Part shown: positions 2,740 to 24,448 of the stretch, piece after piece
Numbering within the stretch: position 1 is the first letter of the stretch
Layout: each line of letters starts with the position of its first letter
Virus record (IMG/VR): IMGVR_UViG_3300028840_005860
Coordinates: 166,070-230,069 of that record
Reading direction: 5' to 3' (one strand)
Length of the DNA: 64,000 nt
Program-made: the position numbers and the translations under genes
The notes under the pieces: generated by a model
Told to the model about the DNA's origin: nothing
The model's database searches: none
Seen by the model: the letters and a program-made list of their open reading frames with translations, nothing else

Positions 2740-3285
2740 ATGACGACCCCGCTCAAGGGACTCAAGGTCGTGGACGCGCTGGGCGCGTTCTACCGCGACG
2801 GCGACCGCCTCATGGTGGCCGACGAGCTCGAGGGTACGCGCGACGTGGACAAGATTTTGAGCGCGTTCGAGGGTCACGAGGTGAGGCTCCTGGCGCACCA
2901 TCGACCGCCTGACGTCCCGCTGCGAGACAGGTGGGGAGCGGGCTGCTGCCTGCTCGAGAACACGGGCCGCTGCCACTACGGGCACCACGATGATCCCGGG
3001 CTCCTGTTCGCCTTCGACTCCGTCGGCGTCCTGCGACGGGAGAAGGACGACTGGATCGTGGAGAGGTCTGACGGCGAGCGACTGCGGGTTTACGTGAACT
3101 TCTTGGTGGGGCACAGGTCGCAGGTCGTTGTCACGTCTATTCCCGACCTAGAGAGCATCGACGAAAAGATCAAGTCGTTCGATCCGTCGAACCTGGACCC
3201 TACCAACCTCGAGGACCTCACCGGGCGCCTTCACGAGATCCGCGAGTTCCTTCAGCAGGTCGAATCCCTCAAGCGAGATCTTTGA
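2740..3285 (+). CDS. Hypothetical protein
   Basis: Genome-typical codon usage; stop overlaps the next start (TGATG); GGGGTA promoter-like motif upstream. Confidence 0.8.
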   Translation: MTTPLKGLKVVDALGAFYRDGDRLMVADELEGTRDVDKILSAFEGHEVRLLAHHRPPDVPLRDRWGAGCCLLENTGRCHYGHHDDPGLLFAFDSVGVLRREKDDWIVERSDGERLRVYVNFLVGHRSQVVVTSIPDLESIDEKIKSFDPSNLDPTNLEDLTGRLHEIREFLQQVESLKRDL

Positions 3286-6200: not shown

Positions 6201-6932
6201 GACGAGGCCAGCGACATCGTGATCGCGGCTCACGCCATCAACGGAGGCACCGTCCCGAGTTTCAAGGATGGCTCGAGGGACTTCACCTTCGTGGAGGTCC
6301 GAGACGAGGCGCAGGTGCTCGAGATGGTCGTGGGCACGGTCGAGAAGCTCTACGCTCGCAGAACCAACTTTCAGGTGCTCAGCCCGCGTCACAAGGGGAC
6401 CCTGGGCGTCACGAACCTGAACCTGCGCATCCGCGAACTCCTGAACCCCAAAACTCCCGGCCTCCGGGAGATGCGCCTCGGCTCGGAGACGGTTCGCGAG
6501 GGAGACCGCGTGATGGTCTCCAAGAACAACTACCGCTACGAGATCTTCAACGGGGACGTAGGCAAGGTCACCCGGCTGGACGAGAGGTCGAAGTCGGTCT
6601 CCGTGAAGATCCACGGTCCTCCGGTCATGCAGGTGGAGATGCCGTTCAGGGACGCCCCTGAGCACCTTCGGCTGGCCTACTGCGTGACCATCCACAAGAG
6701 CCAGGGCCAGGAGTACGACGTCATCCTTATGCCGTGGGTGGGCGGCTTCCACCACCAGCTCCAGCGCAACCTGATCTACACGGCGATCACGCGAGCGCGG
6801 AAGAAGGTGATTCTCGTCGGACATCCCGAGGCTTTGGAAAAAGCCGTTCGTAACAGCAAGATCGATACGCGAAATACTCTCTTTCCCGACCGTCTGAGGG
6901 CGTTTCTCGGCCGATTCAGCAGGACCCCGTGA
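3285..6932 (+). CDS. recD2: RecD2-like SF1B DNA helicase, intein-containing
   Basis: N-terminal OB-like and HhH regions (ENPWAL..IDGITFDQAD), Walker A GLPGTGK/TT interrupted by an intein, VVDESSM, GDAAQLPSVGPG, IFRQ, TIHKSQGQEY, YTAITRAR. Confidence 0.93.
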   Translation: MSNYYAGRVQTVVFENDAQSFYVVKMVLDGRKGKNASVTVRGNVPGLEVREGSWFGFEAKWQNHQTYGRQLVISRAPVVKSWDAQTTVKMLQGHGVGSRVCEALLAHFGEGLPDALSDSERLQEVPSVSEFTAHYLVSRWQAVRSMFQSLKFLSDLNLPKRKIERIYTRFGDEAEQVLSENPWALVEIDGITFDQADEVAMRLGLDLKCAGRIRGAVLHTCKVRRGMGHLYLNSGEIVQGVHQYAPDTERQRIAETLKGLHDESLLVLDNQTRPQTTAIYEPWFHEVERESARLLAERMEHASFEDDDDFAEYLEKLSSVGPETKKVAEAGSRGLGDVAQAAITEWSSHGEIRLSEAQLEGAVNALVEPVSIVTGLPGTGKCVVPTTLVSGPWGARPIGDFLPTGLAPDQDQTLSLDIDTSRGIEKTAYIYNGGVAPTVRITTQSGYTLEGTPEHPIRIVQEGDFVWKKMGDLGVGDVPVIVRGSFHSSGSGGAELPPLTEGDYREFRYRSPRRMSEALARVLGYLISEGTVTSASHWAVTNHDPRVRNDVRRWCQDLFGYEVRDHYDKRVGGLVGVRLNSVQLIRWFRALGVGAATSFTKTVPHVILAGSEGERRGFLSALFEGDGTVHAERFSVEYGTRSEKLARGIQYLLLTLGIVCSFREEQREGASWYRLSMYGQDYDRFRERVGCEFKVLPERTTKTNTNRHLIYNAESLIEALMAQTRPRKGTDYDRFYRYGKGKNGNERHPSREHLEQLLGYAKRSTPVTERLRALMREDFFYDPITTIESGVSQVVDFGAPESHEFLSNGFISHNTTLLRIVVKVLQDAGVPFLLVAPTGIAAKRITAVTGAEASTIHRAFGARGARSEDGRESTYAGIVGDAVSTVDADGSDEYWSFSTMRPHPARVVVVDESSMMDQHLLFRLLSCTVSSCRLVFVGDAAQLPSVGPGNVLRDLVDSERFPVVNLREIFRQDEASDIVIAAHAINGGTVPSFKDGSRDFTFVEVRDEAQVLEMVVGTVEKLYARRTNFQVLSPRHKGTLGVTNLNLRIRELLNPKTPGLREMRLGSETVREGDRVMVSKNNYRYEIFNGDVGKVTRLDERSKSVSVKIHGPPVMQVEMPFRDAPEHLRLAYCVTIHKSQGQEYDVILMPWVGGFHHQLQRNLIYTAITRARKKVILVGHPEALEKAVRNSKIDTRNTLFPDRLRAFLGRFSRTP
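4428..5726 (+). mobile_element. Intein with LAGLIDADG endonuclease in the helicase P-loop (433 aa)
   Basis: GK|CVVPTTLV...GTPEHP...LGYLISEG...FLSALFEGDG...NGFISHN|T; lower GC than the exteins. Confidence 0.95.
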
Positions 6933-9870: not shown

Positions 9871-11166
9871 ATGGTGAAGAAGAAGGAAACCAAGAAGACC
9901 TCCAAGAAGACCGCCAAGAAGAAGACCAAGAAGAAGGCCAAGGCGAAGTCTGCGCTCCTCCAGGCGAAGGGTCTGCTGAACCACGCCCTCAAGAGCAACG
10001 ACTGGCAGGCGAACCTAGACCCCAAGACCGCCAACAAGCCGCTGGATATCCTCTCGACGAGCTCGATCATCATCGATCACCTCATCGGCGGCAAGTTGAA
10101 CGAACGGGGAATCGCCCCCTGTCCGGGCCTCCCTCGAGGTCGCATCGTGAACGTCTACGGGCGCGAGGGCAGCGGCAAGACCACGCTAGCCCTTGGGACA
10201 TCAGCCCAGACGATCCACGACGGGGGGGTCGTCTGCTACATCGACTGGGAGCACGAGATCGTGCCCGGCTATGCCCTGGCGCTCGGCGTGCCCATCGGTG
10301 ACGAGGAGAGGTTCATGCTCTGCCAGCCTGACACTCTCGACGAGGGCATAGCCATCCTCTGGACGATGGTGAACTCCGGCGTGGACCTGGTCGTGCTCGA
10401 CTCCGTCGGGGCTGGCGTTCCCAGGGCGTACTTCGAGAAGTCCATCAAGGAGACCGCCGAGCAGGGACGCGTCGGGATGAACGCCGCTGTGTGGTCGGCT
10501 TTCCTGCCGAAGCTGAAGGCCCGCACGAGCAAGACGGGTTCGGCCGTGCTCGGGGTCTCCCAGATCCGAGACGCTATCAACACTGGCGGGGGTTACGGCG
10601 ACACCTTCACGGTCCAGGGTGGGAAGGCGTGGAAGTTCTACAGCGCGATCCGCCTGCGTCTTCAGCCGATAGGCGTCGAGAAGGCGTCCGACTACTCCGC
10701 CTTGACGAACAAGGCGCAGGATCGGGTGATCGGGGCGAAGATCCGGGCGAAACTCGACAAGTGCAAGGTCAGTCCGCAGCAGGGGAACGAGGAGATTTTC
10801 TACATCCGGTGGGGCGAGGGCATCGACGATCTACGCTCTCTCATCGAGATCGGCTGCGCCCACAGGCTCGTTCAGAAGAAGGGCTCGTGGCTCTACTGGG
10901 TCGACCCGGACGGCGAGCAGCACGGCAAGCAGGGAATGGAGAACTTCCGCAGGATGTTCGTGGACAACGAGCGTCTGGCCGTGGCCCTGGAGAAGCAGGT
11001 CAAGCCGTTCATGGGCGCCACAGGTAGCTCGAAGGACGAGGATGAGGACGAGGACGAAAACGAGCTGTTCGCCGCCGACGCGTTCCAGGACGACGGCGAA
11101 CTCAGGGAGATCCTCTCGAGCATTCAGACGGACGACCCGGAGATTCCTCCCGACGAACCCGCGTGA
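9871..11166 (+). CDS. recA: RecA recombinase
   Basis: GLPRGRIVNVYGREGSGKTT, YIDWEH, VLDSV, SQIR, GGKAWKFYSAIRL, KCKV; Lys-rich N-terminus and acidic tail. Confidence 0.95.
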   Translation: MVKKKETKKTSKKTAKKKTKKKAKAKSALLQAKGLLNHALKSNDWQANLDPKTANKPLDILSTSSIIIDHLIGGKLNERGIAPCPGLPRGRIVNVYGREGSGKTTLALGTSAQTIHDGGVVCYIDWEHEIVPGYALALGVPIGDEERFMLCQPDTLDEGIAILWTMVNSGVDLVVLDSVGAGVPRAYFEKSIKETAEQGRVGMNAAVWSAFLPKLKARTSKTGSAVLGVSQIRDAINTGGGYGDTFTVQGGKAWKFYSAIRLRLQPIGVEKASDYSALTNKAQDRVIGAKIRAKLDKCKVSPQQGNEEIFYIRWGEGIDDLRSLIEIGCAHRLVQKKGSWLYWVDPDGEQHGKQGMENFRRMFVDNERLAVALEKQVKPFMGATGSSKDEDEDEDENELFAADAFQDDGELREILSSIQTDDPEIPPDEPA

Positions 11167-11182: not shown

Positions 11183-12424
11183 GTGCCCCTGAAGATCCGC
11201 GTGAGGAACTTCCAGAGCGTCGAGGACGCGGAGATCGTGGTGGACGGCCTGACGGTCGTCACGGGCACGAACAACGCGGGCAAGTCGGCGTTCTTCCGCG
11301 CCGTCCGCGGCGCCCTGACGAACGCGCGAGGTTCGGACTTCGTGCGGCACGGGACGAGCTCCTGCACCGTCGACGTCGAGGATCTCGAGTCCGGCCGCAA
11401 GCTCACGTGGGAGAAGGGGGCCAAGGTGAACCGCTACACGGTAGACGGCGAGGTCTTCGACCGCGTGGGACACGGGGTTCCGCCGGAGGCGCGCGTCTTC
11501 GGAGTGGAGTCCGTCGGCGCCGGCAACTCCGAGCTGTGGCCTCAGATCGCGCCCCAGATCACGGGCGTGAGCTTCCTGCTCCACGAGCCCGGCTCCGTGA
11601 TCGCCGAGGCCGTGGCCGACGTGGAGCGCGTCAACCAGCTCGGCCGCGCTCTCAAGGCGTGCGAGTCTGACCGGCGCGCGGCCAAGGGCGACCTCAAGAC
11701 CCGACGAGCCGACGCCGCGATTCTGAGCCGCCGCCGCGAGGGGTTCGCAGGCCTGGACGAGTTGCTGCAGCGGCTGACGGAGCTGGAGGCGCGCCGGGTG
11801 GCGGCAGATCGCGTGGCGAAGGCCCACGGCAACCTATCGAAGATGGGTCGCAGGTACCACGATGCCGCGGAGGCCGTCGAGAAACTCGCCGGACTGGAGG
11901 ACCTGGAGGCCCCCGTCCCTCCGGAGGAGCGGGTCGTCGCCGTGCAGGGTGTCGCGACCGAACTCGCCGCCACGCGTTCTCTGCGGTGTCGTCATGACCT
12001 CGCGGCGACCGTCGTCCGAAATCTCGAGGGTTCGGACCAGGTGGGAGACCTCTTGCCCTCGGACGAGCGCGTCGCGTATGTCGAGAAGTTTAGGCACGCT
12101 CTCGGAATGTCCGTGGGCCTGGCCCTCCGGCACGACGAGGCCGTCGAGGAGCGAGACCGGACGCTCGAGGTAGAGGCGGCGCTCGAGGGGATCCTCCTCG
12201 ACGACCAGGTCCTCGACCGCGTGGAGAAGCTCCGACGGGCCGTCGTCAACGCGCGTGGTCTCGTGAGGCGGCGCGCGGAGCTGGGTAAGGAGGTGGCGCA
12301 GCTCGAGCGTGAGCTAGCTCGACACGAGGAGGCCCTTGAGCAGACGATGCTGACGGCGGCCCAGCTGCTTGGGACGTACGAGGAGTGCCCCACCTGCGGC
12401 GGCGCGCTAGACCACGTCCACTGA
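11183..12424 (+). CDS. SbcC/Rad50-like ATPase, N-terminal half ending at the zinc hook
   Basis: IRVRNFQS, Walker A GTNNAGKS, coiled coil, terminal CPTCG; no signature motif or Walker B. Confidence 0.85.
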   Translation: MPLKIRVRNFQSVEDAEIVVDGLTVVTGTNNAGKSAFFRAVRGALTNARGSDFVRHGTSSCTVDVEDLESGRKLTWEKGAKVNRYTVDGEVFDRVGHGVPPEARVFGVESVGAGNSELWPQIAPQITGVSFLLHEPGSVIAEAVADVERVNQLGRALKACESDRRAAKGDLKTRRADAAILSRRREGFAGLDELLQRLTELEARRVAADRVAKAHGNLSKMGRRYHDAAEAVEKLAGLEDLEAPVPPEERVVAVQGVATELAATRSLRCRHDLAATVVRNLEGSDQVGDLLPSDERVAYVEKFRHALGMSVGLALRHDEAVEERDRTLEVEAALEGILLDDQVLDRVEKLRRAVVNARGLVRRRAELGKEVAQLERELARHEEALEQTMLTAAQLLGTYEECPTCGGALDHVH

Positions 12425-12427
12425 GAA

Positions 12428-12736
12428 CTACGACCCGGTGCCCGTGTCGGTTTCTCCGGTTTCGGTACCGGAGCCGTCGGTGGGGGTCTCGGTCCCTTCC
12501 GTGTCGGAGCCGTCGGTGGGGGTCTCGGTCCCTCCCGTGTCGGAGCCGTCGGTGGGGGTCTCGGTCCCTTCCGTGTCGGAGCCGTCGGTGGGGGTCTCGG
12601 TCCCTTCCGTGCTGGAGGCATCGGCGGAGGTCCCGCTGTCGGTACCCGAACCGGTCCCGTCGGTGTCGTCATCGTCCGACCCACAGCATGGAACCACGCT
12701 AAGGATCACGGCAAGTACAGCGTGCTCGATCTTCAT
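12428..12736 (-). CDS. Small secreted/lipoprotein-like protein with Thr/Gly/Asp repeats
   Basis: Signal peptide MKIEHAVLAVILSVVPCC followed by TEGTETPTDGSD repeats. Confidence 0.7.
   Translation of the reverse strand: MKIEHAVLAVILSVVPCCGSDDDDTDGTGSGTDSGTSADASSTEGTETPTDGSDTEGTETPTDGSDTGGTETPTDGSDTEGTETPTDGSGTETGETDTGTGS
12469..12611. repeat. 36-bp tandem repeat, 4 copies
   Basis: Unit CGGAGCCGTCGGTGGGGGTCTCGGTCCCTTCCGTGT at 12469, 12505, 12541 and 12577; coding repeat. Confidence 0.95.
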
Positions 12737-12817
12737 GGCGTAGAAGGCAATCCAATAGGGGAATCAGCGGGTTCTTTGCACCATCTCCGAGTTTCACGTA
12801 GAAACAGAGGAGGCCAG

Positions 12818-15064
12818 ATGACCACCCTGTTCGACGTGGACCTGTACACCGTCTTCCTCGGGTTGACCGGCTCGCACGCCTACGGGACGGCGCGGCCGGG
12901 CTCCGACGTGGACGTTCGGGGAGCCTGTCTCGTCCCCGGTCGGGTCCGGGAGAGCTTCTACCAGACGTTCGAGCAGTTCCTCTCCGAGAACCAGAAGGGG
13001 CCCTGGGGCGATAACGCGCGTCGTGCGGTCGAGGTCGTCCTCCGGCACCCGACGGCGGGCCCGGCGTACACGGACGGTGGCGAGGTCCTGGACCTCTGCG
13101 TGTACTCGATCCACAAGTACGTGGCGCTCGCCGCCAACGCCAACCCAAACGTGCTCGAGCTCCTGTTCTTGGACGACCGAGACGTGCTCTTCACGACGCC
13201 GGCGTGGGACCGGCTCCGGGAACACAGAGACCTGTTCCTGTCGAAGAAGTGTCGTCACACGTACACGGGCTACGCGATGTCGCAGCTCAAGCGCATCAAG
13301 GGGCATCGAGCGTGGCTTCTGAACCCGCCGAAGGCCGAGCCCACGCGGGCGGAGTTCGGACTGCCCGAGGAGTCCGTGCTCCCGGCCGACGTACGCAACC
13401 AGATCGACGAGGCGGTGTCGAAGATCATCCGTGACTGGGGAGTCGAGGACGGTCTCGACGAGCATATCAAGGGTGCTCCACAGGACGTGCTGCGCGAGCG
13501 CATGGCCGATTTCCAGGCGACCGTCCTGAACTGCACGGAGGACATGCTGGACGAGAGGACCTACGAGCTGGCCGGGGCGAGTCTCGGACTCACGAAGGAC
13601 GTGCTCTACGCGATCAAGCAGGAGCGGCGGTACCGGGTGGCGCGGAAGCACTGGGAGCAGTTCAAGCGGTGGGAACGTGACCGCAACCCGGCCCGCGCCG
13701 AGCTCGAGGCGAAGCACGGCTACGACTGCTATTCGGCGGACACGCAGTTTCTGACCGACAGCGGGTGGAAGTACTTCGACGAGGTGGGTCAGGAGGACAT
13801 GCTTGCGACCATGTACGTCGGCAGAGACATGCAGCACAGGCGGCTTGGTGCCCTGGAGTATCAAGAGCCTCTTGAGAGGTTCGACGGGACCTTCACAGGC
13901 AACCTGTATGCGTTCAAGGGTTACCACACCGACGTGCTCGTGACCCCCAACCACAGAATGCTTCATCGTCAGGTCTCGCGAAGGAAGGATGAGACCTACG
14001 GCATCACCATGACAGAAGCCGCGCGGCTGCCGGATGCCTTCGATTTCTTCCGAACGATCCGCCCACGCAAGAAGAGGTACTCCACACAGGACCTTTTCGC
14101 CAACCTTCCAATCAAACCGGAGGCGTTCCTCCGTCTGATGGGCTGGTATCTCTCGGACGGGACCGCGTCAAAGCCGAAGGGTTCGGCGCGCGTGAAGGAT
14201 GTCCGCGTCAGCCAGAAAAAGGGAGGCCGTCTTCATCGGGGCCTTTCCCGGTTTCATGGTCAGTACGGAAAGAGCGCGAACGCCACTCTGCATTCCTACG
14301 ACAGAGAGAGTGGAACGGGAGAGCGGATTACGGAGATGGTCCTGGTGGTCCGAAACAAGATTATCCGGGAGAGGCTCGTGTCGGAGTGCGGCAGGAAGAA
14401 GGACAAGCGCATCCCCCGGTGGGTGTTTGGCCTTTCGAAACGCATGATGGAGATCCTTTTCGATGCGATGTGCGGAGGTGACGGCACCGTCCGTCCCACT
14501 TCCAAGAGAAGTTGGATCTACTACTCGTCCCTGGAGGGACTCGCGGACGACGTCAACGAGCTGGCCGTACACTGCGGCTGGGAGACGTCGCGTTGGGGGC
14601 CGTATCCGAGCCCGACCGACTGGAATCCTGATGCCGTCATGTACCAGGTCCACGTCGATAAGAAGGCGAAGCGGTTTCAGCGGTTCGTCCGGCACGGGGC
14701 CGTTGAGACGGTGCCCGTGAAGAACCATCGAATCGTGTGTTTTACGGTTCCTAACGGAACCTTGATCACCAGGCGCAACGGGCGTGTCGGCATCCATGGG
14801 AACAGCAAGCACGGGGCTCATCTCATCCGTCTCTTGAGGACGGGACTGGAGATTCTGCGAGACGGGGAGTTGCTCGTGCGGCGTCCTGATGCCGAGGAAC
14901 TTGCAAAGATCAGGGACGGTTACTACACGTACGACGACCTGATGGCCGAGGCCGAATCGCTCCAGGAGGCGATGAAGGAGGCTGCCAAGGACTCCGCGCT
15001 GCCGGAGGCTCCCGACAGGGAGCGCATCGACGAGGTTCTTTTCTCGATCCTTGAGACCGCCTAA
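12818..15064 (+). CDS. Pol-beta superfamily nucleotidyltransferase (YcgL/RlaP/T4 NrdC.11-like), intein-containing
   Basis: GSHAYGTARPGSDVDVRG, NPNVLELLF, GYAMSQL, GYD|intein|SKHGAHLIRLL; GAGGAGG RBS before ATG 12818. Confidence 0.88.
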   Translation: MTTLFDVDLYTVFLGLTGSHAYGTARPGSDVDVRGACLVPGRVRESFYQTFEQFLSENQKGPWGDNARRAVEVVLRHPTAGPAYTDGGEVLDLCVYSIHKYVALAANANPNVLELLFLDDRDVLFTTPAWDRLREHRDLFLSKKCRHTYTGYAMSQLKRIKGHRAWLLNPPKAEPTRAEFGLPEESVLPADVRNQIDEAVSKIIRDWGVEDGLDEHIKGAPQDVLRERMADFQATVLNCTEDMLDERTYELAGASLGLTKDVLYAIKQERRYRVARKHWEQFKRWERDRNPARAELEAKHGYDCYSADTQFLTDSGWKYFDEVGQEDMLATMYVGRDMQHRRLGALEYQEPLERFDGTFTGNLYAFKGYHTDVLVTPNHRMLHRQVSRRKDETYGITMTEAARLPDAFDFFRTIRPRKKRYSTQDLFANLPIKPEAFLRLMGWYLSDGTASKPKGSARVKDVRVSQKKGGRLHRGLSRFHGQYGKSANATLHSYDRESGTGERITEMVLVVRNKIIRERLVSECGRKKDKRIPRWVFGLSKRMMEILFDAMCGGDGTVRPTSKRSWIYYSSLEGLADDVNELAVHCGWETSRWGPYPSPTDWNPDAVMYQVHVDKKAKRFQRFVRHGAVETVPVKNHRIVCFTVPNGTLITRRNGRVGIHGNSKHGAHLIRLLRTGLEILRDGELLVRRPDAEELAKIRDGYYTYDDLMAEAESLQEAMKEAAKDSALPEAPDRERIDEVLFSILETA
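13727..14803 (+). mobile_element. Intein with LAGLIDADG endonuclease (359 aa)
   Basis: D|CYSADTQFLTDSGW...VTPNHRM...MGWYLSDG...MCGGDG...VGIHGN|S. Confidence 0.93.
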
Positions 15065-15108
15065 ACGGCAGCCGGTTTCGCGCAAATCTGGTGGGTACAA
15101 GTGAGGAG

Positions 15109-16098
15109 ATGCTTCGTCTCCTCTGGCGCACCGACGTCCACTACTCCGACCAGACGCCTTCCTCCCGGACAGACGACTGGACGGAGACGGTCGCTCACAA
15201 ACTCGCCGAGGTCGGCCGAATCGCGCGCGACCACGAGTGCAGGGCCGTGATCGACGGCGGCGACTTCTTTAACGAGAAGACTCCCGTCCGCACGAGCCAC
15301 CGTCTCGTGGGGCGCATCGCCCGCATCCACGCGCACTACCCGTGCCCCGTGTTCTGCAACGTGGGCAACCACGACGTGCGCCTTGCCAGACTCGAGAACC
15401 TCGCTGAGAGCCCGCTCGGGAGCCTCTTCGACGCGGGCGTGTTCTACCCTCTGCACGACAGCAACGAGATGCTCGTGGACCACGAGGGGGTGAAGGTCCG
15501 GGCCGTCGGCATCCCGTACCACGGGCCGCGCTACGATCTCGACAGGTTCCGCGCGATCAGTCGTCGCGACGAGGACTGGCTCCTGTGTGCGGCCCACCTG
15601 CTCGCGTCTCCGCATGGCGGAGAGATGTTCAAGAAGGAGGACATCGTCCGCTACTCCGACCTGCCCGAGCTCGCGCCCGACGTGGACATTTTCCTGCTGA
15701 GCCACTGGCATAAGGACCAGGGCATCGAGGAGGTCGCGGACGGCAAGTGGGTGGTGAACGTGGGGAGTTTGACGCGAGGAGCCCTGACGCAGGACAACGT
15801 GGACCGAGAGCCGGGCGTGGTGGTCATCGGCCTCTGGCCGCGATCTCGGGGGATCCCGCCCCAGCTGGAGTTCGTGAAAATCTCGGTCCGGCCCGCGAGC
15901 GAGGTCTTCGACATGGAGAAGCGCACTCGAGAGGAGGCACGGCTCATGACGGTGGATGCCTTCGTCGAGTCGGTGAGGCGCGAGCTCCAGTCGTCGTCCG
16001 ACCGTCCTTTCAGCGAGATCGTCGCCGAGATGGACCTTCCCGACAGGGTGAGGGAACGGGCGATGGCGTACATCGAGGAGGCCGCGAGGCCGCGATGA
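15109..16098 (+). CDS. SbcD/Mre11-like metallophosphoesterase nuclease
   Basis: TDVH, GGDFF, VGNHD, SHWH, VGSL motifs; GAGGAG before ATG 15109. Confidence 0.9.
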   Translation: MLRLLWRTDVHYSDQTPSSRTDDWTETVAHKLAEVGRIARDHECRAVIDGGDFFNEKTPVRTSHRLVGRIARIHAHYPCPVFCNVGNHDVRLARLENLAESPLGSLFDAGVFYPLHDSNEMLVDHEGVKVRAVGIPYHGPRYDLDRFRAISRRDEDWLLCAAHLLASPHGGEMFKKEDIVRYSDLPELAPDVDIFLLSHWHKDQGIEEVADGKWVVNVGSLTRGALTQDNVDREPGVVVIGLWPRSRGIPPQLEFVKISVRPASEVFDMEKRTREEARLMTVDAFVESVRRELQSSSDRPFSEIVAEMDLPDRVRERAMAYIEEAARPR

Positions 16099-17137: not shown

Positions 17138-17437
17138 GTGACCAACCTCGACCAGGAACTTGAGAACGTCGTCAGGAAGCGAAAGCAGCTCCAGGGGGAG
17201 CTCGAGCGCCTGCGCGGTCGCAAGGAGCAGGCCGAGGCTAATCTCGAGGCCGTCGAGAAGGAGATTCGGTCCAAAGGAATCGAACCCTCCGAGATCGACG
17301 AGAAGCTCCGCCAGCTCGAGGAGAAGTACCAGACCCTCGTCGAGGAACTCAAGAAAGACACCGAAGCAGCCGAGCGGGCCCTCGCCCCGTTCGTCGGAGG
17401 AAGCGAAAACAATGAAGATCGAAGTAGCCAAGCCTGA
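17138..17437 (+). CDS. Small coiled-coil protein
   Basis: GGAGG RBS; heptad-rich 99 aa. Confidence 0.75.
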   Translation: MTNLDQELENVVRKRKQLQGELERLRGRKEQAEANLEAVEKEIRSKGIEPSEIDEKLRQLEEKYQTLVEELKKDTEAAERALAPFVGGSENNEDRSSQA

Positions 17438-18572
17438 TCTCGAGGCGGCGCTCCAGGTCGCATCCATCGGGACCGCGTCGACCGGAAGCGACCTCACGAC
17501 CCACTTCGTATTCTGGCACAGGCCAGACGGCATCGTCGAGGTTCTGTCCAGTAACAACCGTCTCGGCGTCTCGATGCCCATCGCGGGCTGCAAGGCGGTC
17601 CTCCCGGACGGCGACGACACGGGCTCGTTCACCATCGAGTCGTGGCGCCTCAACAAGTGGATCGCGGCGGTCGAGGACGCCGTGCTCGCGCTGGAGCTGG
17701 AGGACGGCGTCGTCAAGGCGACGTGCCCGAAGGGTTCGGTCAAGTTCCAGTCCCTCGATCCCTCGGAGTTCCCTCACTGGGAGGAGGCTCTCGCGGAGAG
17801 CCCGGCCGGGACCGCCATCGCGGCGCGGCGGCTCCACGCGGCCCTGTCCCACGTCAAGCTGTTCATCTCGGACAAGGACACCACCACCCCGAAGCTGGCG
17901 GTGACCGAGATCCTGAACGAGTCCCTCCAGGCGACCGACAAGGGCGCGCTCGGGGTCGTGACTATCGATGAGCTGGCCAAGAGCAACCTCCGCATCCACG
18001 GCAAGGACCTGGGCCAGGTGCTCTCCTTCCTGGCCGCGTGCGGCGACGACGAGGTGCAGGTTCGGGAGCACGAGAGGTGCCTCTTCCTCGTGCGTCAGGA
18101 CGAGGGCGTCATGTCGGTCGGGCGGCCGCACCACGCCTTCCCGGACATCAAACTCGACAAGAAACCGGACGATCCGCATCACTGGACGATCAAGACGGCG
18201 GAACTTCGCATGGCAATCAACGCCCTCGCAGCCTCGGCCGCGAGGGAGGACACGCGGCTCAGCTTCGGGATCGACAGGAACATGGTCGGCCTGACGATGA
18301 CCAGCGCGTCGGGAGACCGCGTCACCCTGCACTTGGAGGCGCAGGACCAGAGTTCGGGCGAGGACGCCGAGGTCCCGCTCCCGGAGAGCGGTTTCGACAT
18401 CGCCTACCCCTACCTCCTCAAGCTGCTCGGCCAGTACCAGGCCGAGACCATCAAGTTCGGCCTCAATCCCCAGGTAGACCAGGCGACCGGAAAACCCCGT
18501 GGCGGCTGGGTGCGCTTCCGTGAGGATCGGGGTGGCGACGACTACCTCACGCTGCTCGTCTGGCTGCTCTAG
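17412..18572 (+). CDS. dnaN: DNA polymerase III beta sliding clamp-like protein
   Basis: About 386 aa; MKIEVAKPDLEAAL start, SLDPSEFP, LQATD, AFPD and three-domain periodicity; dnaX nearby. Confidence 0.75.
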   Translation: MKIEVAKPDLEAALQVASIGTASTGSDLTTHFVFWHRPDGIVEVLSSNNRLGVSMPIAGCKAVLPDGDDTGSFTIESWRLNKWIAAVEDAVLALELEDGVVKATCPKGSVKFQSLDPSEFPHWEEALAESPAGTAIAARRLHAALSHVKLFISDKDTTTPKLAVTEILNESLQATDKGALGVVTIDELAKSNLRIHGKDLGQVLSFLAACGDDEVQVREHERCLFLVRQDEGVMSVGRPHHAFPDIKLDKKPDDPHHWTIKTAELRMAINALAASAAREDTRLSFGIDRNMVGLTMTSASGDRVTLHLEAQDQSSGEDAEVPLPESGFDIAYPYLLKLLGQYQAETIKFGLNPQVDQATGKPRGGWVRFREDRGGDDYLTLLVWLL

Positions 18573-18598: not shown

Positions 18599-19270
18599 GT
18601 GACGGATCTCGCTGCCCTTCCCGACCTCACGGCCGCGCGTGCGATGGCCAACAAGGCCCTCGGGCTCCGGGACGCGCTCGACCAGCAGATCGAGGAGAAC
18701 GACCGACGCATCACCGACCTGGAGAGGGAGGAGGAGCTGCTCGAGCTCGTCGGCAACCTGCTCCGACGCCTCATCGACGCCGAGGTCACGGATGGCGTCC
18801 GGGCCGTCGAGAAGCTTCAGACGGAGGGACTCCAGGAGATCTTCCACGACCAAGAGATGTCCGTGCGCGCCGAGGTAGAGGAGTCGAGGGGCAGGATCTC
18901 CGTCACTCTCCTGACGCAGCGCAGGCAGAAGGACGGTTCTTTCGTAGAGGGCGTCGTAGATCAGTCGTTCGGCGGCAGCGTGCTCACGATGCAGAGCATT
19001 CTCATGCGGATCACGGTCATCTTCCGTCGGGGACTGCGGCCGCTCCTCCTCCTGGACGAGACGCTGGGGGCCGTGGCGAACAAGTACGTCGACCGGGCGG
19101 CGCGGTTCCTGTCCACGCTCTGCCGACGCCTAGAACTCGACATTCTCCTGATAACCCACGACGAGGCCCTAGTGGGCGCGGGCCATCGAGCCTACTACGT
19201 GACCTACGCCAAGGACCGCGCGAGGTTCCGGGAGATCTCCTCCGAGGAGATGCAGGGAATCAGACGATGA
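18599..19270 (+). CDS. SbcC/Rad50-like ATPase, C-terminal half
   Basis: Short coiled coil, signature-like SFGGS, Walker B LLLLDE, H-loop LITHD; no Walker A. Confidence 0.85.
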   Translation: MTDLAALPDLTAARAMANKALGLRDALDQQIEENDRRITDLEREEELLELVGNLLRRLIDAEVTDGVRAVEKLQTEGLQEIFHDQEMSVRAEVEESRGRISVTLLTQRRQKDGSFVEGVVDQSFGGSVLTMQSILMRITVIFRRGLRPLLLLDETLGAVANKYVDRAARFLSTLCRRLELDILLITHDEALVGAGHRAYYVTYAKDRARFREISSEEMQGIRR

Positions 19271-19785
19271 AGACGGAGGGTCAGATCAAGCAGAAGGCCA
19301 AGCAGGTGATCTTCCGTCACCGCAAGGAGTACGTCCGTCAGGGACTCGCCCGGCGGCCGCCGAACTGCCTCTACAACGAGGAGGTCACGCTTCCCGTCCA
19401 CATGGCGAACCGAGCGACCATCCACGTCTGCGGATACTATCCCGGTGCCGACCGCAACAACGTCGTCTGCGACTCGACCATGGGAGGCGACCGGCAGGCG
19501 GCCGAGTGCCCCTACTTCCGCGTCCGCCGGAGTCCGGAGGCCCTCAAGGACGAGTTTCACGACAGGATAGGTCGAGGGATCGGCTACCTTGCGAAGGCGT
19601 ACCCGGACGTGGCCGCGCTCATGTGGGTGATGGGTCCCGGCAAGGAGACGAGTCGGGAGGAGGCCGAGTCCGAACCCGAGCCCGAGAACCAGGGCAACAT
19701 CCTCGCGTTCTTCGGCGAGGAGGAACCCGAGGACCTACCTGAGCGTCCTCTCGTGGAGGAGGGATCCGATGACGAGTCTCCTTGA
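19267..19785 (+). CDS. Cys-containing hypothetical protein
   Basis: ATGA overlap with the upstream gene; four spaced Cys and an acidic tail. Confidence 0.7.
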   Translation: MKTEGQIKQKAKQVIFRHRKEYVRQGLARRPPNCLYNEEVTLPVHMANRATIHVCGYYPGADRNNVVCDSTMGGDRQAAECPYFRVRRSPEALKDEFHDRIGRGIGYLAKAYPDVAALMWVMGPGKETSREEAESEPEPENQGNILAFFGEEEPEDLPERPLVEEGSDDESP

Positions 19786-20308
19786 GGTGATGGACTTCGG
19801 AGCCACTATCAAGGAGACCCGGCGTGGGCGGGTAGCTCCCGCGATGATGGAGTTCGAGGTGAACCCGGAGCTCGCGCCATACCTCGTCTCGAGCACGCGC
19901 TCGGTCCTGTGGGTTCCCCACGCCTCGCAGGCGCAGACGATCCGGGCAGCTGTCCGCAAGCGCAAGGGACTCGAGGCGGAGCTCGTCGCCGCCATCGTCA
20001 GCATGGGAGAGCAGGCGGAGTGGGGGAACGCCCATCCGCTGACCTCCGAAGGACTCGACGCGTGCATCGAGCACCTGAAGTACTACGGCCTCGAGCAGCT
20101 CGAGATGCTCATCGCGCCCGAGACCGACGTGTCGGGACTGCTCGTTCCCGACATCCCGCTCGTCAGGGCGTCCTGGATGCCCGAGGAGGCGGTCGTGGTC
20201 GTCCCCGCCGACCGGGGGTTCGTGGGCACCCTCGGAGTCATCGGGCAGTACAAGGCGGTCGCGGTGGTCCACAATGCGAGCCGAGGAGTCGCGGTCGCGT
20301 GGAGGTGA
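19769..20308 (+). CDS. Hypothetical protein resembling the C-terminal half of the major capsid protein
   Basis: By-eye alignment to 57248..58126 (see findings). Confidence 0.5.
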   Translation: MTSLLEVMDFGATIKETRRGRVAPAMMEFEVNPELAPYLVSSTRSVLWVPHASQAQTIRAAVRKRKGLEAELVAAIVSMGEQAEWGNAHPLTSEGLDACIEHLKYYGLEQLEMLIAPETDVSGLLVPDIPLVRASWMPEEAVVVVPADRGFVGTLGVIGQYKAVAVVHNASRGVAVAWR

Positions 20309-20982
20309 GCGAGTGGATCGGTCGTGCGCTAGACGACTCGACCCTGCTGGACGAGCACCGCGACTACCTCATGGGACGCGGCGCGACGCCCGACCTGATC
20401 GAGAAGTGGGGTATCCGCACCTTCGAGTGCCCCTTCTCGCGCTGTCCCGACCCAGTTCTGGCCAAGCGATACGGTCCGCACCTGGAGACTTTCAGGGAGC
20501 GCATCGTCTACCCGCTCCGGTCGCTGCGCGGACGCCTGCTGGGCTTCGACAGCCGTCATGTGGACCAGAAGGACGACTTGCGGCTGCTCCTCGCCGAGAG
20601 CCGCTGGAACTGCGTCTGGATCGGGGCCCCCCAGGGAATGGACCTGATCTGGGCGGGCTCGGATCTCGTCGTCGTCGAGGGCCGCTACGACGTGTTCGCC
20701 ATGCTCCAGATCGTCGGCGACAAGGCGGTCTGGGGTTCGGGACCGGCTCACCTGTCGTGGAAACACGTCGAGTCCGTGCGCCGCTGGGTGCGCGGGACCG
20801 TGCACGTAGTCTACGACCAGGACGAAGCGGGACGCAGGGGCACCGAGAAGGGGTTAGGAGAGATGCGGCGGCACGAGGTAAGGTGCATCGAGGTTCCTTA
20901 CGGCGCGTCCGGGGACGACCCCGGCGCAATCTGGGATCGCGGAGGGAGAGAGGCACTCCGCGAGGCATTCCCGTCCCTCTGA
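20305..20982 (+). CDS. DnaG-type primase catalytic core/TOPRIM, lacking the zinc-binding domain
   Basis: YLMGRG, FRERIVYP, GFDSR, VVEGRYD, YDQDEAG, DDPG; GTGA overlap with the upstream gene. Confidence 0.85.
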   Translation: MSEWIGRALDDSTLLDEHRDYLMGRGATPDLIEKWGIRTFECPFSRCPDPVLAKRYGPHLETFRERIVYPLRSLRGRLLGFDSRHVDQKDDLRLLLAESRWNCVWIGAPQGMDLIWAGSDLVVVEGRYDVFAMLQIVGDKAVWGSGPAHLSWKHVESVRRWVRGTVHVVYDQDEAGRRGTEKGLGEMRRHEVRCIEVPYGASGDDPGAIWDRGGREALREAFPSL

Positions 20983-20995
20983 AGGAGACATCGTC

Positions 20996-21529
20996 ATGGA
21001 GATCTACAAGGCCGGTGCCGAAGTGATGGACCGGGTCAAGAAGCTCGTCGCGGACTATCATCCTCACCTCGCGCTCATCCTGGACGACATCGGGGTGGTG
21101 TTCCGCGAGAAGGCGATCGAGAAGGGCGGGAAGGTGCTCCTCGGCGCCACGAAGAAGGCACCGCCCCTGCTCCCCGTGCTGACCGACAAGAAGTTCAACT
21201 ACAAGTTCATCATCGAGATCGGGGAGGACGTGTGGAAGGAGCTGACCCCCGCGCAGCAGACGGCCCTGCTCGACCACCACCTGTGCGCGATGAGGGTCGA
21301 GGAAGACGCCGAGAGTGGCACGATGAAGTGCTCGATCCGGCCGCCCGACTTCGTCGGCTACCGCGAGGAGGTCGAGCGCCACGGGATGTGGCGCCCCATG
21401 GATGACGACACCCTGTCGGTCATCGAGGAGATGTTCGGCAAGAAAGCCGAGGAGGTCCAGCAGGCCAGCGCGGCCTCGGAGACGGCGGACGAGGACGTAG
21501 AGGACATCGTCGAGGCGCTGAATGCCTGA
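20996..21529 (+). CDS. Putative phage metallopeptidase-like protein (degenerate HExxH)
   Basis: KFIIEI..DVW..L...QQTALLDHHLCAM...PPDFVGY.E.V.RHG.W pattern; strong RBS. Confidence 0.65.
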   Translation: MEIYKAGAEVMDRVKKLVADYHPHLALILDDIGVVFREKAIEKGGKVLLGATKKAPPLLPVLTDKKFNYKFIIEIGEDVWKELTPAQQTALLDHHLCAMRVEEDAESGTMKCSIRPPDFVGYREEVERHGMWRPMDDDTLSVIEEMFGKKAEEVQQASAASETADEDVEDIVEALNA

Positions 21530-21869: not shown

Positions 21870-23342
21870 GTGAGTCTCGCGACGAAATACCGGCCCCTGC
21901 ACTACGCCGACGTGCTCGGTCAGGAGGCGACCATCGCCGTCTGTCGGCAATACGTCAAGGAAGGTAAGGGATTCCAGCAGAGTTACGTGTTTGCCGGGGC
22001 GCACGGGGGCGGCAAGACCACCATCGCGCGCATCCTCGGTCGCGCCCTCCTGTGCGAGAATCCCCGGGACGGCGAACCCTGCGACGAGTGCTCTCAGTGT
22101 GCCGCAATGCTCGCGGACAAGTCGGAAAACCTGATCGAGGTCGACGCGGCGACGAACAGCGGCAAGGAGGACATGAAGCGCATCACCGAGGAGGCGCAGT
22201 TCGGGAGCTTCTCGGGACGCCGGAAGATCTACATACTCGACGAGGCGCACGAGCTCAGTCGGCAGGCGATGGACGCCCTCCTCAAGCCGCTCGAGGACAA
22301 TCGACGAGGGACGAGCGAGAAGCAGATCGTCTGCCTCTTCTGCACGACGGAGCCCGAAAAGATGCGCCCGGCGATCCTGAGCCGCTGCGCCCCCCTGTTC
22401 CGCATCCGGGCCAACACGCCCCAGGAGATCGCCGCGCGCCTGAGGCACATCTGCGAGAAGGAGGGGATCGACCACGACCCCGAGGTGCTGCCGCTGATCG
22501 CGGAGGTGACCGAGTGTCACGTCCGGGATGCCATCCAGGCCGTCGAGGGCGTCTCCATGCTCGGTCGAATCGACCGGGACAACGTGGCCCGCTACCTGCA
22601 CCTGGACGCCAACGCCCTGTACCTCGACGTGCTCGAGAACCTGGGATCGGATCTCCCGGCCCTGCTCGCGACCATCGAGAAACTCGACGAGAAGGTCTCC
22701 CCGGCCGTCCGCTACGAGCGCATGGCCGACGTGTGCATGCTGGCCTACCGGCTCGTCAACCTCGGAGAGGCGTCGATCCCCTCCTACTGGGATCGACAGC
22801 GACTCGAGGCCGTCGGGAAGTTGCACCGGGAGTTTTTGATCGAGTTCGCCCAGCGGTTCGCCCAGCGCCCCGTTCGCTCGACCTCGGCCATGTTCGCCTG
22901 CGACGTCTCGGCGCTGCACCAGCGACGTGCGGGCATCGTCGTTCGAACCGAGCGGTCCGAGGTCGTCGTGCCCTCGCACGCCTCGGTTCGGGCCTCTCCT
23001 ACGCCGACGGATCCTCCGGCGCCGACCGAGGCGACCGCGGCCCCTATCGAACCATCACCGAAGCCCGGGTCCCCCACGTCGCCTGGGACCGAGAACCTCT
23101 CCGCGAGCGTTGGTAGTATGAGCGCTGATCCCTACCTCACCGAGACGGGGATCGGCATCAACCCGCTTGCGCAGAACACCCGTCGCGCCCACGAGGCGCG
23201 GCGGCCAAACCCCGAAGAGACCATGCCGGCGATGCCGGCAGACGAGTTCGTGAAAACGCTGAAGCGCCGGGTCATTGAGCTGTTGGAGGAGCAGTCATCC
23301 AGTGGCAGACCGGCGCGACGAAACGACCTGGGTAGCCCTTGA
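21870..23342 (+). CDS. dnaX: DNA polymerase III gamma/tau clamp-loader subunit
   Basis: SLATKYRP, GAHGGGKTT, C-x8-C-xx-C-xx-C zinc site, EVDAA, ILDEAH, SRC motif. Confidence 0.93.
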   Translation: MSLATKYRPLHYADVLGQEATIAVCRQYVKEGKGFQQSYVFAGAHGGGKTTIARILGRALLCENPRDGEPCDECSQCAAMLADKSENLIEVDAATNSGKEDMKRITEEAQFGSFSGRRKIYILDEAHELSRQAMDALLKPLEDNRRGTSEKQIVCLFCTTEPEKMRPAILSRCAPLFRIRANTPQEIAARLRHICEKEGIDHDPEVLPLIAEVTECHVRDAIQAVEGVSMLGRIDRDNVARYLHLDANALYLDVLENLGSDLPALLATIEKLDEKVSPAVRYERMADVCMLAYRLVNLGEASIPSYWDRQRLEAVGKLHREFLIEFAQRFAQRPVRSTSAMFACDVSALHQRRAGIVVRTERSEVVVPSHASVRASPTPTDPPAPTEATAAPIEPSPKPGSPTSPGTENLSASVGSMSADPYLTETGIGINPLAQNTRRAHEARRPNPEETMPAMPADEFVKTLKRRVIELLEEQSSSGRPARRNDLGSP

Positions 23343-23836: not shown

Positions 23837-24448
23837 ATGACATCGAGCTGGGCGGATTGCAGGACGGTCGACCCCTCCGAGCTGGAGAGCCGGGTCAGCA
23901 CCGAGGACAACATCGAGTTCCTCGAGCAGATCCTCTCCGAGGAGCCGAGCGAGGAGTCGCAGCGCAACCTCGAGCGCGTGCGGGAGATCATGGAGGAGCT
24001 GCCGCCCCGCGAGGCCGACTTCGTCGACCTCTACTTCTTCTCCCACAAGACGCAGACCGACATCGCGGAGATCTTCAAGGTCTCGCAGCCCACCGTCTGC
24101 TACCGGCTCCAGCGCGCGACGGCCCGGATCCGGTTCGTGCTCGGGCTCCCCGACGTTTCCGAGGAGGAGATGCTCACCGCCCTGCGCGGTTTCCTCTCCG
24201 ACAACGAGGACGTTCAGATCATGCGGCTGATGTACGAGACCACGTGTCAGTCGGCCGTCGCCAAGCGCCTCGGCGTGACCCAAGGAAAGGTCCGGCATCG
24301 TTTCATGCGTTCCACGAAGCGGATGCTCGATCATCCTGGCATGCACAAGCTCGCGAAGATCTTCGCGAGCATCGCGGAAAACCTGAACATCCTGCACGAG
24401 GTGGACAGGCCCTCCTGGGACGAGAAGATCAGCTACGTCCTGGATTAG
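23837..24448 (+). CDS. Protein with two tandem sigma70 region-4-like HTH domains
   Basis: LPPREADFVDLYF..KTQTDIAEIFKVSQPTV and DVQIMRLMY..CQSAVAKRLGVTQGKV; no region 2 recognised. Confidence 0.8.
   Translation: MTSSWADCRTVDPSELESRVSTEDNIEFLEQILSEEPSEESQRNLERVREIMEELPPREADFVDLYFFSHKTQTDIAEIFKVSQPTVCYRLQRATARIRFVLGLPDVSEEEMLTALRGFLSDNEDVQIMRLMYETTCQSAVAKRLGVTQGKVRHRFMRSTKRMLDHPGMHKLAKIFASIAENLNILHEVDRPSWDEKISYVLD

Follow-up and report, generated by a model that had tools for sequence, protein, structure and literature searches.

Besides its major capsid gene, the 230-kb jumbo phage of IMG/VR record IMGVR_UViG_3300028840_005860 carries a 179-residue, stripped-down version of the capsid (HK97) fold, as predicted by AlphaFold2, which lies directly downstream of a cysteine-rich protein in 46 of 46 related loci examined and directly upstream of a DnaG-type primase in 45 of 45. 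This suggests that the capsid fold has been reused for a job in DNA replication, although this function is inferred. All coordinates refer to the window, that is, the whole 64,000-nt stretch of DNA analysed (positions 166,070 to 230,069 of the record), which was read with genetic code 11.

A capsid-like ORF among replication genes

We first examined whether the ORF described in the original prediction, a truncated capsid-protein paralogue lying within the replication module, is real. The ORF is found at 19769..20308 (+) and encodes 179 aa, and a ribosome-binding-like site, GGAGGAGGG (19755..19763, +), lies 6 nt upstream of its ATG, inside the 3′ end of the upstream gene. The N-terminus read from this ATG (M-x-x-L-L-E-V) is conserved in homologues. 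The three sequence blocks that had been aligned by eye are all present at collinear positions in the ORF and in the 292-aa ORF at 57248..58126 (+), which is the major capsid protein (MCP) of the phage (phrog_2522, E 7e-50; Pfam Phage_capsid_4, PF25209). This MCP has 2082 homologues annotated as HK97-family MCP and is 38% identical to phage G gp27 and 48.5% identical to the Tunturi_5 major head protein. The 179-aa ORF lies 37 kb away from it, among replication genes, which include a beta-clamp-like sliding clamp (17412..18572, +; phrog_947, E 5e-23, with a weak TIGR00663 dnaN hit), an ABC-type ATPase, C-terminal-half-like protein (18599..19270, +; phrog_15167, E 7e-19, with ABC ATPase hits at residues 149-202), a primase and a clamp-loader subunit (21870..23342, +; PF13177 DNA_pol3_delta2, E 2.9e-27). 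Hence, the original observation is confirmed.

The ORF belongs to an undescribed family. Homologue searches gave 63 and 256 clusters, the 256 at 50% identity with a median length of 181 aa, and the gene is single-copy in the 230-kb genome. The near-invariant residues of the family are P37, L39, V40, W48, W85, G95, L114, W136, P146, R149, G153, H168, N169 and R172, with a C-terminal H-N-x-S-R-G motif at 20270..20287. Searches of the ORF and of family members against Pfam, PHROGs, NCBIfam and PADLOC gave no hits (for Pfam, the ORF and 44 family members, including no match to Linocin_M18, PF04454, and none to DUF1884), and profile searches of PDB sequences with two alignments of the family (A1 and the broader A4) returned only noise, with E of 0.1 or worse.

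Profile similarity to the capsid protein family

We next asked whether the similarity to the MCP exceeds chance. As raw pairwise similarity it does not, since the three blocks have 3/29, 5/25 and 3/9 identities and BLOSUM62 scores of 1, 2 and 5, the whole-protein Smith-Waterman score is 35 against 31.9 +/- 5.1 for shuffles (125 of 500 shuffles reach it), and the best BLASTP E value is 0.35, on a different segment. The hhalign comparison with a shallow MCP profile, in which all members are at least 88% identical, was not significant either (E 0.39 and 0.15). However, when a broad profile of the ORF family (126 representatives) was aligned with a diverse MCP profile, hhalign gave P = 0.003-0.0035 over ORF residues 17-179 and MCP residues 84-290, at about 15% identity, and reproduced the by-eye register for all three blocks, with P90-L-T-S aligned with P162-I-S-G, I129 with A223, H168-N169 with Y280-N281, and R172-G173 with R283-G284. 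The observed score of 26.8 was reached by 0 of 150 column shuffles (13.5 +/- 2.2) and 0 of 150 block shuffles (14.7 +/- 2.9), and the reversed profile scored 11.9. The alignment leaves 16 residues of the ORF before its start, compared to 83 in the MCP, and the segments aligned with MCP 188-222 and 250-278 are much shorter in the ORF.

The predicted structure is a reduced HK97 fold

Structure prediction supports the relationship independently. The AlphaFold2 model is very confident (pLDDT 96.3, pTM 0.90, all five models with pLDDT of at least 95). In Foldseek searches of PDB and BFVD, all top 50 hits were capsids or encapsulins, the best being phage G gp27 (E 4.5e-6, TM by query 0.57). VIA-align gave Z 11.0 over 143 aa at 3.6 A to the encapsulin EncA and Z 9.4 to HK97 gp5 residues 133-381, and in a Foldseek-independent scan of 48,161 chains all top 50 were capsid, encapsulin or GTA shell entries (Z 6.6-9.9). 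Matches in the ESM Atlas had TM values of 0.57-0.65 by query and included fused rubrerythrin-encapsulin clusters. Thus, in four libraries and with three aligners, no other fold appeared among the top hits, and about 140 of 179 residues aligned at about 3.2 A (range 3.1-4.0 A). On the other hand, TM-scores normalised by target are low (0.2-0.43), sequence identity is 6-13%, and Z values of 8-11 are only moderately above the stated background of the tool (7-8). The ESM Atlas's own model of this sequence is poor (pLDDT 0.33), so that the neighbours found by a look-alike search with it are meaningless.

A predicted structure unrelated to the HK97 fold had been named in advance as the outcome that would refute the original prediction, and this was not what we found. 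In contrast to the original proposal of an A-domain derivative, the alignments span the whole model and MCP residues 84-290 (HK97 gp5 residues 133-381), so P-domain elements are retained. What is missing is the N-arm, the E-loop and two internal segments, and the model shows only short strands in residues 1-61. Nor is the ORF a recent or sporadic truncation, as it represents an old family of constant length, about 180 aa, evolving at the rate of its replication neighbours. Its identity to the homologue in LR745208.1 is 33%, whereas the MCP remains at 90%.

A conserved position between a 4-Cys protein and a minimal primase

We then looked at the genomic context. The gene directly upstream (19267..19785, +) encodes a novel 172-aa partner protein with 74 homologues, which has a basic N-terminal helix, four conserved cysteines (C34/C55/C68/C81) and a YPDxAALMWV motif. 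Its disordered acidic tail carries Q-G-N-I-L-A-F-F-G (19690..19716), which is PIP-box-like, and P-E-R-P-L-V-E (19738..19758). AlphaFold2 gives residues 1-125 a pLDDT above 90 and predicts a disordered tail with a helix at 145-149, but fold searches found no convincing match (best Z 5.8; Foldseek E above 2). The conserved C-terminal peptide occurs only in the closer subclade. The sliding clamp is a possible target of the PIP-like motif, but a search for PIP-like terminal motifs on other proteins of the genome, to support clamp binding, gave nothing convincing. To test for duplication of a two-gene head cassette, we compared the partner with the protein upstream of the MCP, and the two are unrelated.

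The gene directly downstream (20305..20982, +) encodes a minimal DnaG-type primase of 225 aa, consisting of the catalytic core plus Toprim only (Pfam DNAG_N/Toprim_2), which covers only positions 190-355 of 414 of the TIGR01391 profile and has no zinc finger. Neither a DnaG zinc ribbon nor a DnaB_C helicase was found in the genome. It is followed by a PhageMetallopep-family protein (20996..21529, +; PF18894, E 1.9e-21), conserved downstream of the primase in most loci. In the window, the start of the partner gene overlaps the ATPase stop (ATGA), the partner gene overlaps the ORF by 17 nt, and the GTG start of the primase overlaps the TGA stop of the ORF (GTGA). The block reads as one uninterrupted transcription unit with the replication genes.

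In the related loci, retrieved with alignment A1, the partner is directly upstream in 46 of 46 and the primase directly downstream in 45 of 45, with a 4-nt stop/start overlap in 19 of 36 distinct loci. Insertions occur elsewhere in the block but not inside the trio, apart from one 716-nt gap, and the trio also holds in LR745208.1 at 33% identity. However, the whole 8-kb block is collinear across this clade, so adjacency alone partly reflects shared ancestry. In three cluster representatives (P0201, P0215 and P0265), the partner is fused to the domain of the ORF; one of these fusions is carried on 4 contigs and occupies the place of the two separate genes. A few members carry C-terminal Rho_N (E 7e-11) or HhH-like tails, although these amount to only about 5 of 209 members and the family is acidic (median pI 5.6). 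The ORF family is absent, with both profiles, from the cultured relatives Tunturi_5, in which the partner homologue abuts the primase, and phage G, which has the primase only. Hence, the partner is primase-linked, but the ORF is not universally needed for priming. A complex prediction for the ORF with the full-length partner scored 0.01 against a mark of 0.32, which counts neither for nor against binding. Among sequencing runs, the locus was found only in DNA runs from sediment and seawater and in no RNA run.

Discussion

In summary, the ORF encodes a compact, highly diverged protein with a predicted HK97 fold, a reduced relative of the phage-G-type MCP lineage, which in an uncultured clade of marine and sediment jumbo phages is no longer part of the head module. 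In our view, it is a fixed, translationally coupled member of a three-gene unit comprising a novel 4-Cys protein, the HK97-like protein and a bare DnaG-core primase. We favour, with about even odds (0.5), that it is an exapted non-capsid scaffold or adaptor subunit, perhaps self-associating as HK97-fold proteins do, which would work in one complex with the 4-Cys partner, as the natural fusions suggest, and would organise or tether the minimal primase, which has no zinc finger and no helicase-binding domain, at the replisome or on DNA. The analysis establishes the predicted fold, the remote homology to the MCP family, the size and constant length of the family, the single copy, the invariant gene order, the overlapping junctions, the fusions and the nucleic-acid-binding tails, whereas physical complex formation, oligomerisation and any effect on priming are inferred. 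The original interpretation is therefore only partly supported: the HK97-fold derivative holds and an exapted factor fits the fixed position in a primase operon, but the restriction to an A-domain needs correction, and neither the decoy nor the assembly modulator is supported on present evidence.

Other explanations appear less likely. The protein could still work in head morphogenesis, as a minor, vertex or capping capsid protein or as an assembly or size modulator engaging MCP capsomers through retained A/P-domain surfaces, its gene merely happening to lie in the replication block. The HK97 fold is otherwise known only from self-assembling shells (PMC8346489), the nearest viral structural neighbour is the MCP type of its own lineage, and jumbo phages often scatter structural genes, so that position does not exclude a virion role. 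However, it lacks counterparts of MCP residues 1-83, the N-arm and E-loop that make lattice contacts, it is translationally coupled to the primase and the partner rather than lying in the head module, it is fused to the partner in some lineages, some members carry HhH or Rho_N tails, and its divergence to 33% identity is not expected of a lattice partner of an ultra-conserved MCP, which makes this reading unlikely. Similarly doubtful is an encapsulin-like pair, in which the 4-Cys protein would be cargo, recruited by its C-terminal peptide or by N-terminal fusion to an oligomer or mini-shell that sequesters or concentrates a metal-dependent activity during replication. The layout mirrors Family 1 encapsulins, with the putative cargo gene directly upstream, a disordered linker and a conserved C-terminal peptide that the alternative N-terminal fusions lack, the best PDB Z-score is to an encapsulin, and a truncated HK97 fold paired with an enzyme has a precedent in Family 4 encapsulins (PMC8346489). 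Against this, the E-loop and N-arm needed for closed shells are missing, there is no Linocin_M18 or DUF1884 match, the peptide fits a clamp-binding PIP box equally well, and nothing in the present data indicates assembly.

An enzyme or ligand-binding protein built on an HK97 scaffold seems improbable. Polar residues (R149, H168, N169, R172 and, in the closer subfamily, E28, D148 and H102) are unusually well conserved, including the H-N-x-S-R-G motif, across 126 representatives at 30-58% identity, but N169, R172 and G173 align with the equally conserved N281, R283 and G284 of the MCP family, so the motif may be a structural inheritance of the fold, and no enzyme family matched by sequence or structure. 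A decoy that would soak up host sensors of the capsid protein (CapRel, Lit or PifA-type triggers) is very unlikely: although the protein shares the fold of a class that triggers such defences and lies in one apparent transcription unit with the replication genes, it has no meaningful surface similarity to the MCP, lacks its N-terminal third, diverges freely without covariation with it, keeps a fixed position in 46 of 46 loci and is coupled to the primase rather than lying in a variable anti-defence locus, is fused to the 4-Cys protein in some lineages and has no PADLOC-related neighbours. Least likely is that the HK97 resemblance is an artefact or a convergence, through an over-confident model or an unrelated alpha/beta fold that merely superposes, despite the low target-normalised TM-scores and the poor Atlas model, given the high confidence of all five models, the exclusive HK97-fold matches and the independent profile signal, collinear from residue 17 to the C-terminus.

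A further, more tentative possibility is that the HK97 fold, so far known only from virus capsids, gene-transfer agents and encapsulin shells, has been exapted inside a virus for a non-shell role, in which a reduced, capsomer-like oligomer would serve as the organising platform of a split primosome made of a 4-Cys (perhaps metal or Fe-S) template or clamp adaptor, the HK97-like scaffold and a bare DnaG catalytic core, in a widespread clade of marine and sediment jumbo phages lacking both a DnaG zinc finger and a DnaB helicase. The HK97 fold is the signature of the whole realm of tailed phages and herpesviruses, and outside capsids it is known only in encapsulins. A conserved, shrunken HK97-fold protein wired into a primase operon would be a first clear case of a virus reusing its own capsid fold for genome replication, and a tractable example of how far the fold can be reduced while still folding, from 292 to 179 residues. 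The finding also defines two uncharacterised protein families, the HK97-like protein and the 4-Cys partner with no known fold, and points to an unconventional priming system in abundant environmental jumbo phages. As ESMFold-type models miss this fold and all curated profile libraries miss the family, similar hidden capsid-fold derivatives may be common.

Comparison with known HK97-fold proteins

Compared to the MCPs of the phage G/Tunturi_5 lineage, including that of this phage, the ORF has the same predicted fold and collinear profile similarity with a shared C-terminal N-x-R-G motif, but it is 179 aa against 292 aa, has no Pfam or PHROG hit, lies in the primase operon and evolves far faster. 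Family 1 encapsulins such as Myxococcus xanthus EncA give the highest structural Z-score and a gene layout reminiscent of cargo and shell, but the ORF is about 90 residues shorter than these shell proteins of about 260-300 aa, lacks the E-loop and N-terminal helix, and is phage-encoded within a replication operon. Our literature searches for a non-capsid or truncated HK97-fold phage protein turned up only the work on Family 4 'A-domain encapsulins' (DUF1884, PF08967; PDB 2PK8; Andreas & Giessen 2021, PMC8346489), the only described class of strongly truncated HK97-fold proteins, which are encoded next to a non-structural partner (an enzyme) with which they are proposed to form a complex. Those proteins are about 100 aa, A-domain only, restricted to Euryarchaeota and a few Bacteroidetes, and placed downstream of metabolic enzymes, whereas the present family is about 180 aa, keeps P-domain elements, is viral and has no PF08967 match, and 2PK8 was not among the top structural hits. 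Finally, second capsid-fold paralogues such as the T4 gp24 vertex protein also represent a second HK97-fold gene besides the MCP in a phage, but gp24-type paralogues are full-length, clearly similar in sequence to the MCP, sit in the head module and are built into the capsid, which, as far as the evidence goes, does not hold here.

The ORF and its sequence similarity to the major capsid protein

The window is the last 64 kb of a 230,069-bp virus record that is estimated to be about 90% complete, indicating a jumbo phage of about 65% GC. Using genetic code 11 only, we confirmed that the 179-aa ORF at 19769..20308 (+) exists, with a coding-like GC3 of 0.87 and a GGAGGAGGG site 6 nt upstream of its ATG. 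The original prediction, made by eye, was that this ORF is a truncated paralogue of the phage capsid protein located among replication genes. All of the peptides on which it was based are present, and the capsid strings lie in the 292-aa ORF at 57248..58126, which is the major head protein (phrog_2522, E 7e-50; weak Pfam Phage_capsid hits) and has 2082 homologues annotated as HK97-family MCPs.

We then examined whether the similarity between the two proteins exceeds chance. As raw pairwise similarity it does not, since the best BLASTP hit has an E of 0.35 and falls on another segment, the three blocks aligned by eye have only 3/29, 5/25 and 3/9 identities (BLOSUM62 scores of 1, 2 and 5), and the Smith-Waterman score is reached by 125 of 500 shuffles. 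An hhalign comparison with an MCP profile made of near-identical sequences was also insignificant. We therefore built a broad profile of the ORF family from 126 representatives at 30-58% identity and a diverse MCP profile from the MCP of the window, Tunturi_5 gp334, phage G gp27, Rctr197k and two actinophage MCPs. With these, hhalign gave P = 0.0035 over ORF residues 46-157 against MCP 112-250 and, with a greedier threshold, P = 0.0029 over ORF 17-179 against MCP 84-290. Both alignments reproduce the register read by eye for all three blocks, including N169/R172/G173 against N281/R283/G284. An empirical null supports this result, as the observed score of 26.8 was reached by 0 of 150 column-shuffled MCP profiles (13.5 +/- 2.2) and 0 of 150 block-shuffled profiles (14.7 +/- 2.9), and the reversed profile scored 11.9. 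In summary, the observation behind the original prediction holds, and the eye had picked out a true but very faint signal.

The predicted structure is HK97-like

With a 44-sequence alignment, AlphaFold2 gave a very confident model of the ORF protein (mean pLDDT 96.3, pTM 0.90, all five models at 95 or above). Foldseek searches of the PDB and of BFVD with this model returned only HK97-fold capsids, encapsulins and GTA shells in the top 50, the best being phage G gp27 (E 4.5e-6, TM 0.57 by query). VIA-align gave Z-scores of up to 11.0 (EncA, 143 residues, 3.6 A) and a Z of 9.4 to HK97 gp5, with residues 1-179 of the model spanning chain residues 133-381. A Foldseek-independent scan of 48,161 representative chains again listed only capsid-type shells in the top 50 (Z 6.6-9.9), and a structural search of the ESM Atlas gave TM 0.57-0.65 by query over 136-147 residues at about 3.1 A, all to MCP or encapsulin clusters, the first of which belongs to the same Pfam family as the MCP of this phage. 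The ESM Atlas holds the exact sequence of the ORF protein, but with a failed model (pLDDT 0.33), and single-sequence structure atlases therefore hide this fold assignment.

A predicted structure unrelated to the HK97 fold had been named in advance as the outcome that would rule out the original prediction, and this was not what was found; the fold is HK97-like. The protein had been proposed to be a derivative of the A-domain, whereas the match covers both A- and P-domain regions. Relative to the MCP, the ORF lacks residues 1-83 (N-arm, E-loop) and is also much shorter in two internal stretches, aligned with MCP 188-222 and MCP 250-278.

A stable protein family of constant length

A word-indexed search found 63 homologues of 34-77% identity, and an exhaustive HMMER search found 256 clusters at 50% identity. 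Among 209 collected sequences, the median length is 181 aa and the median pI is 5.6, showing that this is a stable family of constant length and not an occasional truncation. No match was found in the curated libraries searched, and the gene is single-copy in the genome. A handful of family members carry C-terminal Rho_N (E 7e-11), HhH/alpha-CTD-like or Lys-rich tails. The source environments are marine sediment and seawater, and no RNA run holds the locus.

The named relatives of the phage, as judged by the MCP, are LR745208.1 (485 kb, 55% GC; 89.7% identical), Tunturiibacter phage Tunturi_5 (48.5%) and Bacillus phage G (38.3%), and of these only LR745208.1 has the ORF family, at 33.5% identity. 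The 120 best of the 2082 MCP homologues are all at least 89% identical, yet the 172-aa protein encoded upstream of the ORF, the HK97-like protein and the primase (19267..20982 together) are only 33-39% identical between this phage and LR745208.1. The capsid protein is either under extraordinary constraint or has been exchanged horizontally across this clade.

The ORF lies in a fixed position between a four-cysteine protein and a primase

The ORF sits in an uninterrupted run of + strand genes, encoding a PD-(D/E)XK nuclease, a small protein, a beta-like clamp, an ABC-type ATPase, the 172-aa protein (hereafter the partner), the ORF, a primase, a PhageMetallopep protein, a small protein, a clamp loader, a small protein and a sigma factor. 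No terminator-like site was found on the + strand between 15685 and 23514. The junctions are ATGA between the ATPase and the partner, a 17-nt overlap between the partner and the ORF, and GTGA between the ORF and the primase. We next compared 44 viral loci and 2 MAG loci and found the partner directly upstream in 46 of 46, and the primase directly downstream in all 45 that extend far enough. Insertions occur between the ATPase and the partner in about 7 loci and after the primase in several, while inside the trio there is only a single 716-nt gap. Of 36 distinct loci, 19 have the 4-nt stop/start overlap between the ORF and the primase. The same trio was seen in individually inspected homologues at 35-42% identity and in LR745208.1. 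The gene for the sigma factor, a sigma-70 region-4 protein (23837..24448), is a conserved end-marker of the replication block in most related loci.

The partner (19267..19785) forms a new family of its own with 74 homologues. It has a basic N-terminal helix, conserved C34, C55, C68 and C81, a YPDxAALMWV motif and an acidic disordered tail, and its folded domain, although confidently predicted, matches no known fold. In the closer subclade the tail carries Q-x-N-I-L-A-F-F-G (Q-G-N-I-L-A-F-F-G in this phage) and P-E-R-P-L-V-E. The first of these fits the PIP-box consensus Qxx(I/L)xxFF, and a clamp gene lies two genes upstream, but clamp binding is a hypothesis only, and no supporting motif was found on other proteins. 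In three independent cluster representatives the partner is fused, through an acidic linker, to the N-terminus of the HK97-like domain; one such 370-aa protein is carried on four contigs and occupies the place of the two separate genes. In Tunturi_5, where the HK97-like gene is absent, a partner homologue (gp21) abuts the primase (gp22) with nothing between them, and phage G has the primase alone. Hence, the partner-primase link is the older one, and the HK97-like gene is a clade-specific insertion between them or a loss in the relatives.

The primase (20305..20982) matches only the catalytic core of DnaG (TIGR01391 positions 190-355 of 414). Searches of the roughly 90%-complete genome found no DnaG zinc ribbon (PF01807) and no DnaB_C helicase (PF03796), while the controls for both searches gave the expected hits, which points to an unconventional priming and unwinding system.

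Other features of the window

The ATPase upstream of the partner may be part of a split SbcC/Rad50-like ATPase (11183..12424, 15091..16098 and 18599..19270), as an N-terminal Walker-A/AAA_23 protein and, 6 kb away, a 223-aa protein with ABC signature/Walker-B-like hits are encoded separately, with an Mre11/SbcD-like Metallophos gene between them. Several large genes (3282..6932, 36185..39634, 52063..54843, 58293..61436) carry intein/Hint and LAGLIDADG homing-endonuclease domains, including a RecD2-like helicase and the gene just downstream of the MCP, so that the region is heavily invaded by selfish elements. RNA-repair-type genes are also present (12722..15064 and 39676..42240), encoding an RlaP-like nucleotidyltransferase and a protein that combines a 2'-5' RNA ligase/2H domain with a poly(A) polymerase/CCA-adding head domain. 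The phage further encodes a class I/II-type ribonucleotide reductase large subunit (4..2484), a RecA homologue (9871..11166) and, at 43491..49625, a 2044-aa ORF with a strong coding signal (GC3 0.92).

Possible roles and relation to known systems

Our analysis shows a reduced HK97-fold protein that is remotely homologous to the MCP of the lineage and conserved as a fixed, coupled member of a partner-ORF-primase unit. From this we infer, in the absence of expression or proteomic evidence, that the protein has left capsid duty and acts as a scaffold or adaptor subunit with the four-cysteine partner in a primase/replisome complex, possibly self-associating as HK97-fold proteins do. The one complex prediction gave no verdict and is not evidence either way, and we put this reading at a probability of about 0.5.

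Among the alternatives, a residual role in head assembly and an encapsulin-like cargo/shell pair formed with the partner both remain possible but unlikely, an enzyme built on an HK97 scaffold is less likely still, and a modelling artefact is the least likely of all. The original prediction had suggested a decoy, an assembly modulator or an exapted factor, an interpretation that is only partly supported. An immune decoy is very unlikely, as the protein shares only about 15% identity with the MCP and lacks its N-terminal third, diverges freely while the MCP is about 90% conserved, and sits in a fixed operonic position rather than in a variable accessory locus.

We found no paper describing a phage HK97-fold protein in a replication operon. 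The fold itself is known, and the nearest described proteins are the MCPs themselves, the classical encapsulins, which give the best Z-score and whose cargo-like gene logic the partner-ORF layout resembles, although binding of the partner to the ORF protein is unproven and its tail peptide also fits a clamp-binding motif, and the Family 4 "A-domain encapsulins" (DUF1884, about 100 aa, archaeal, next to metabolic enzymes; PMC8346489). Compared to these, the ORF protein lacks the lattice elements and the head-module position of the MCPs, and has neither the Linocin_M18 or DUF1884 profiles nor the sizes of the encapsulins.
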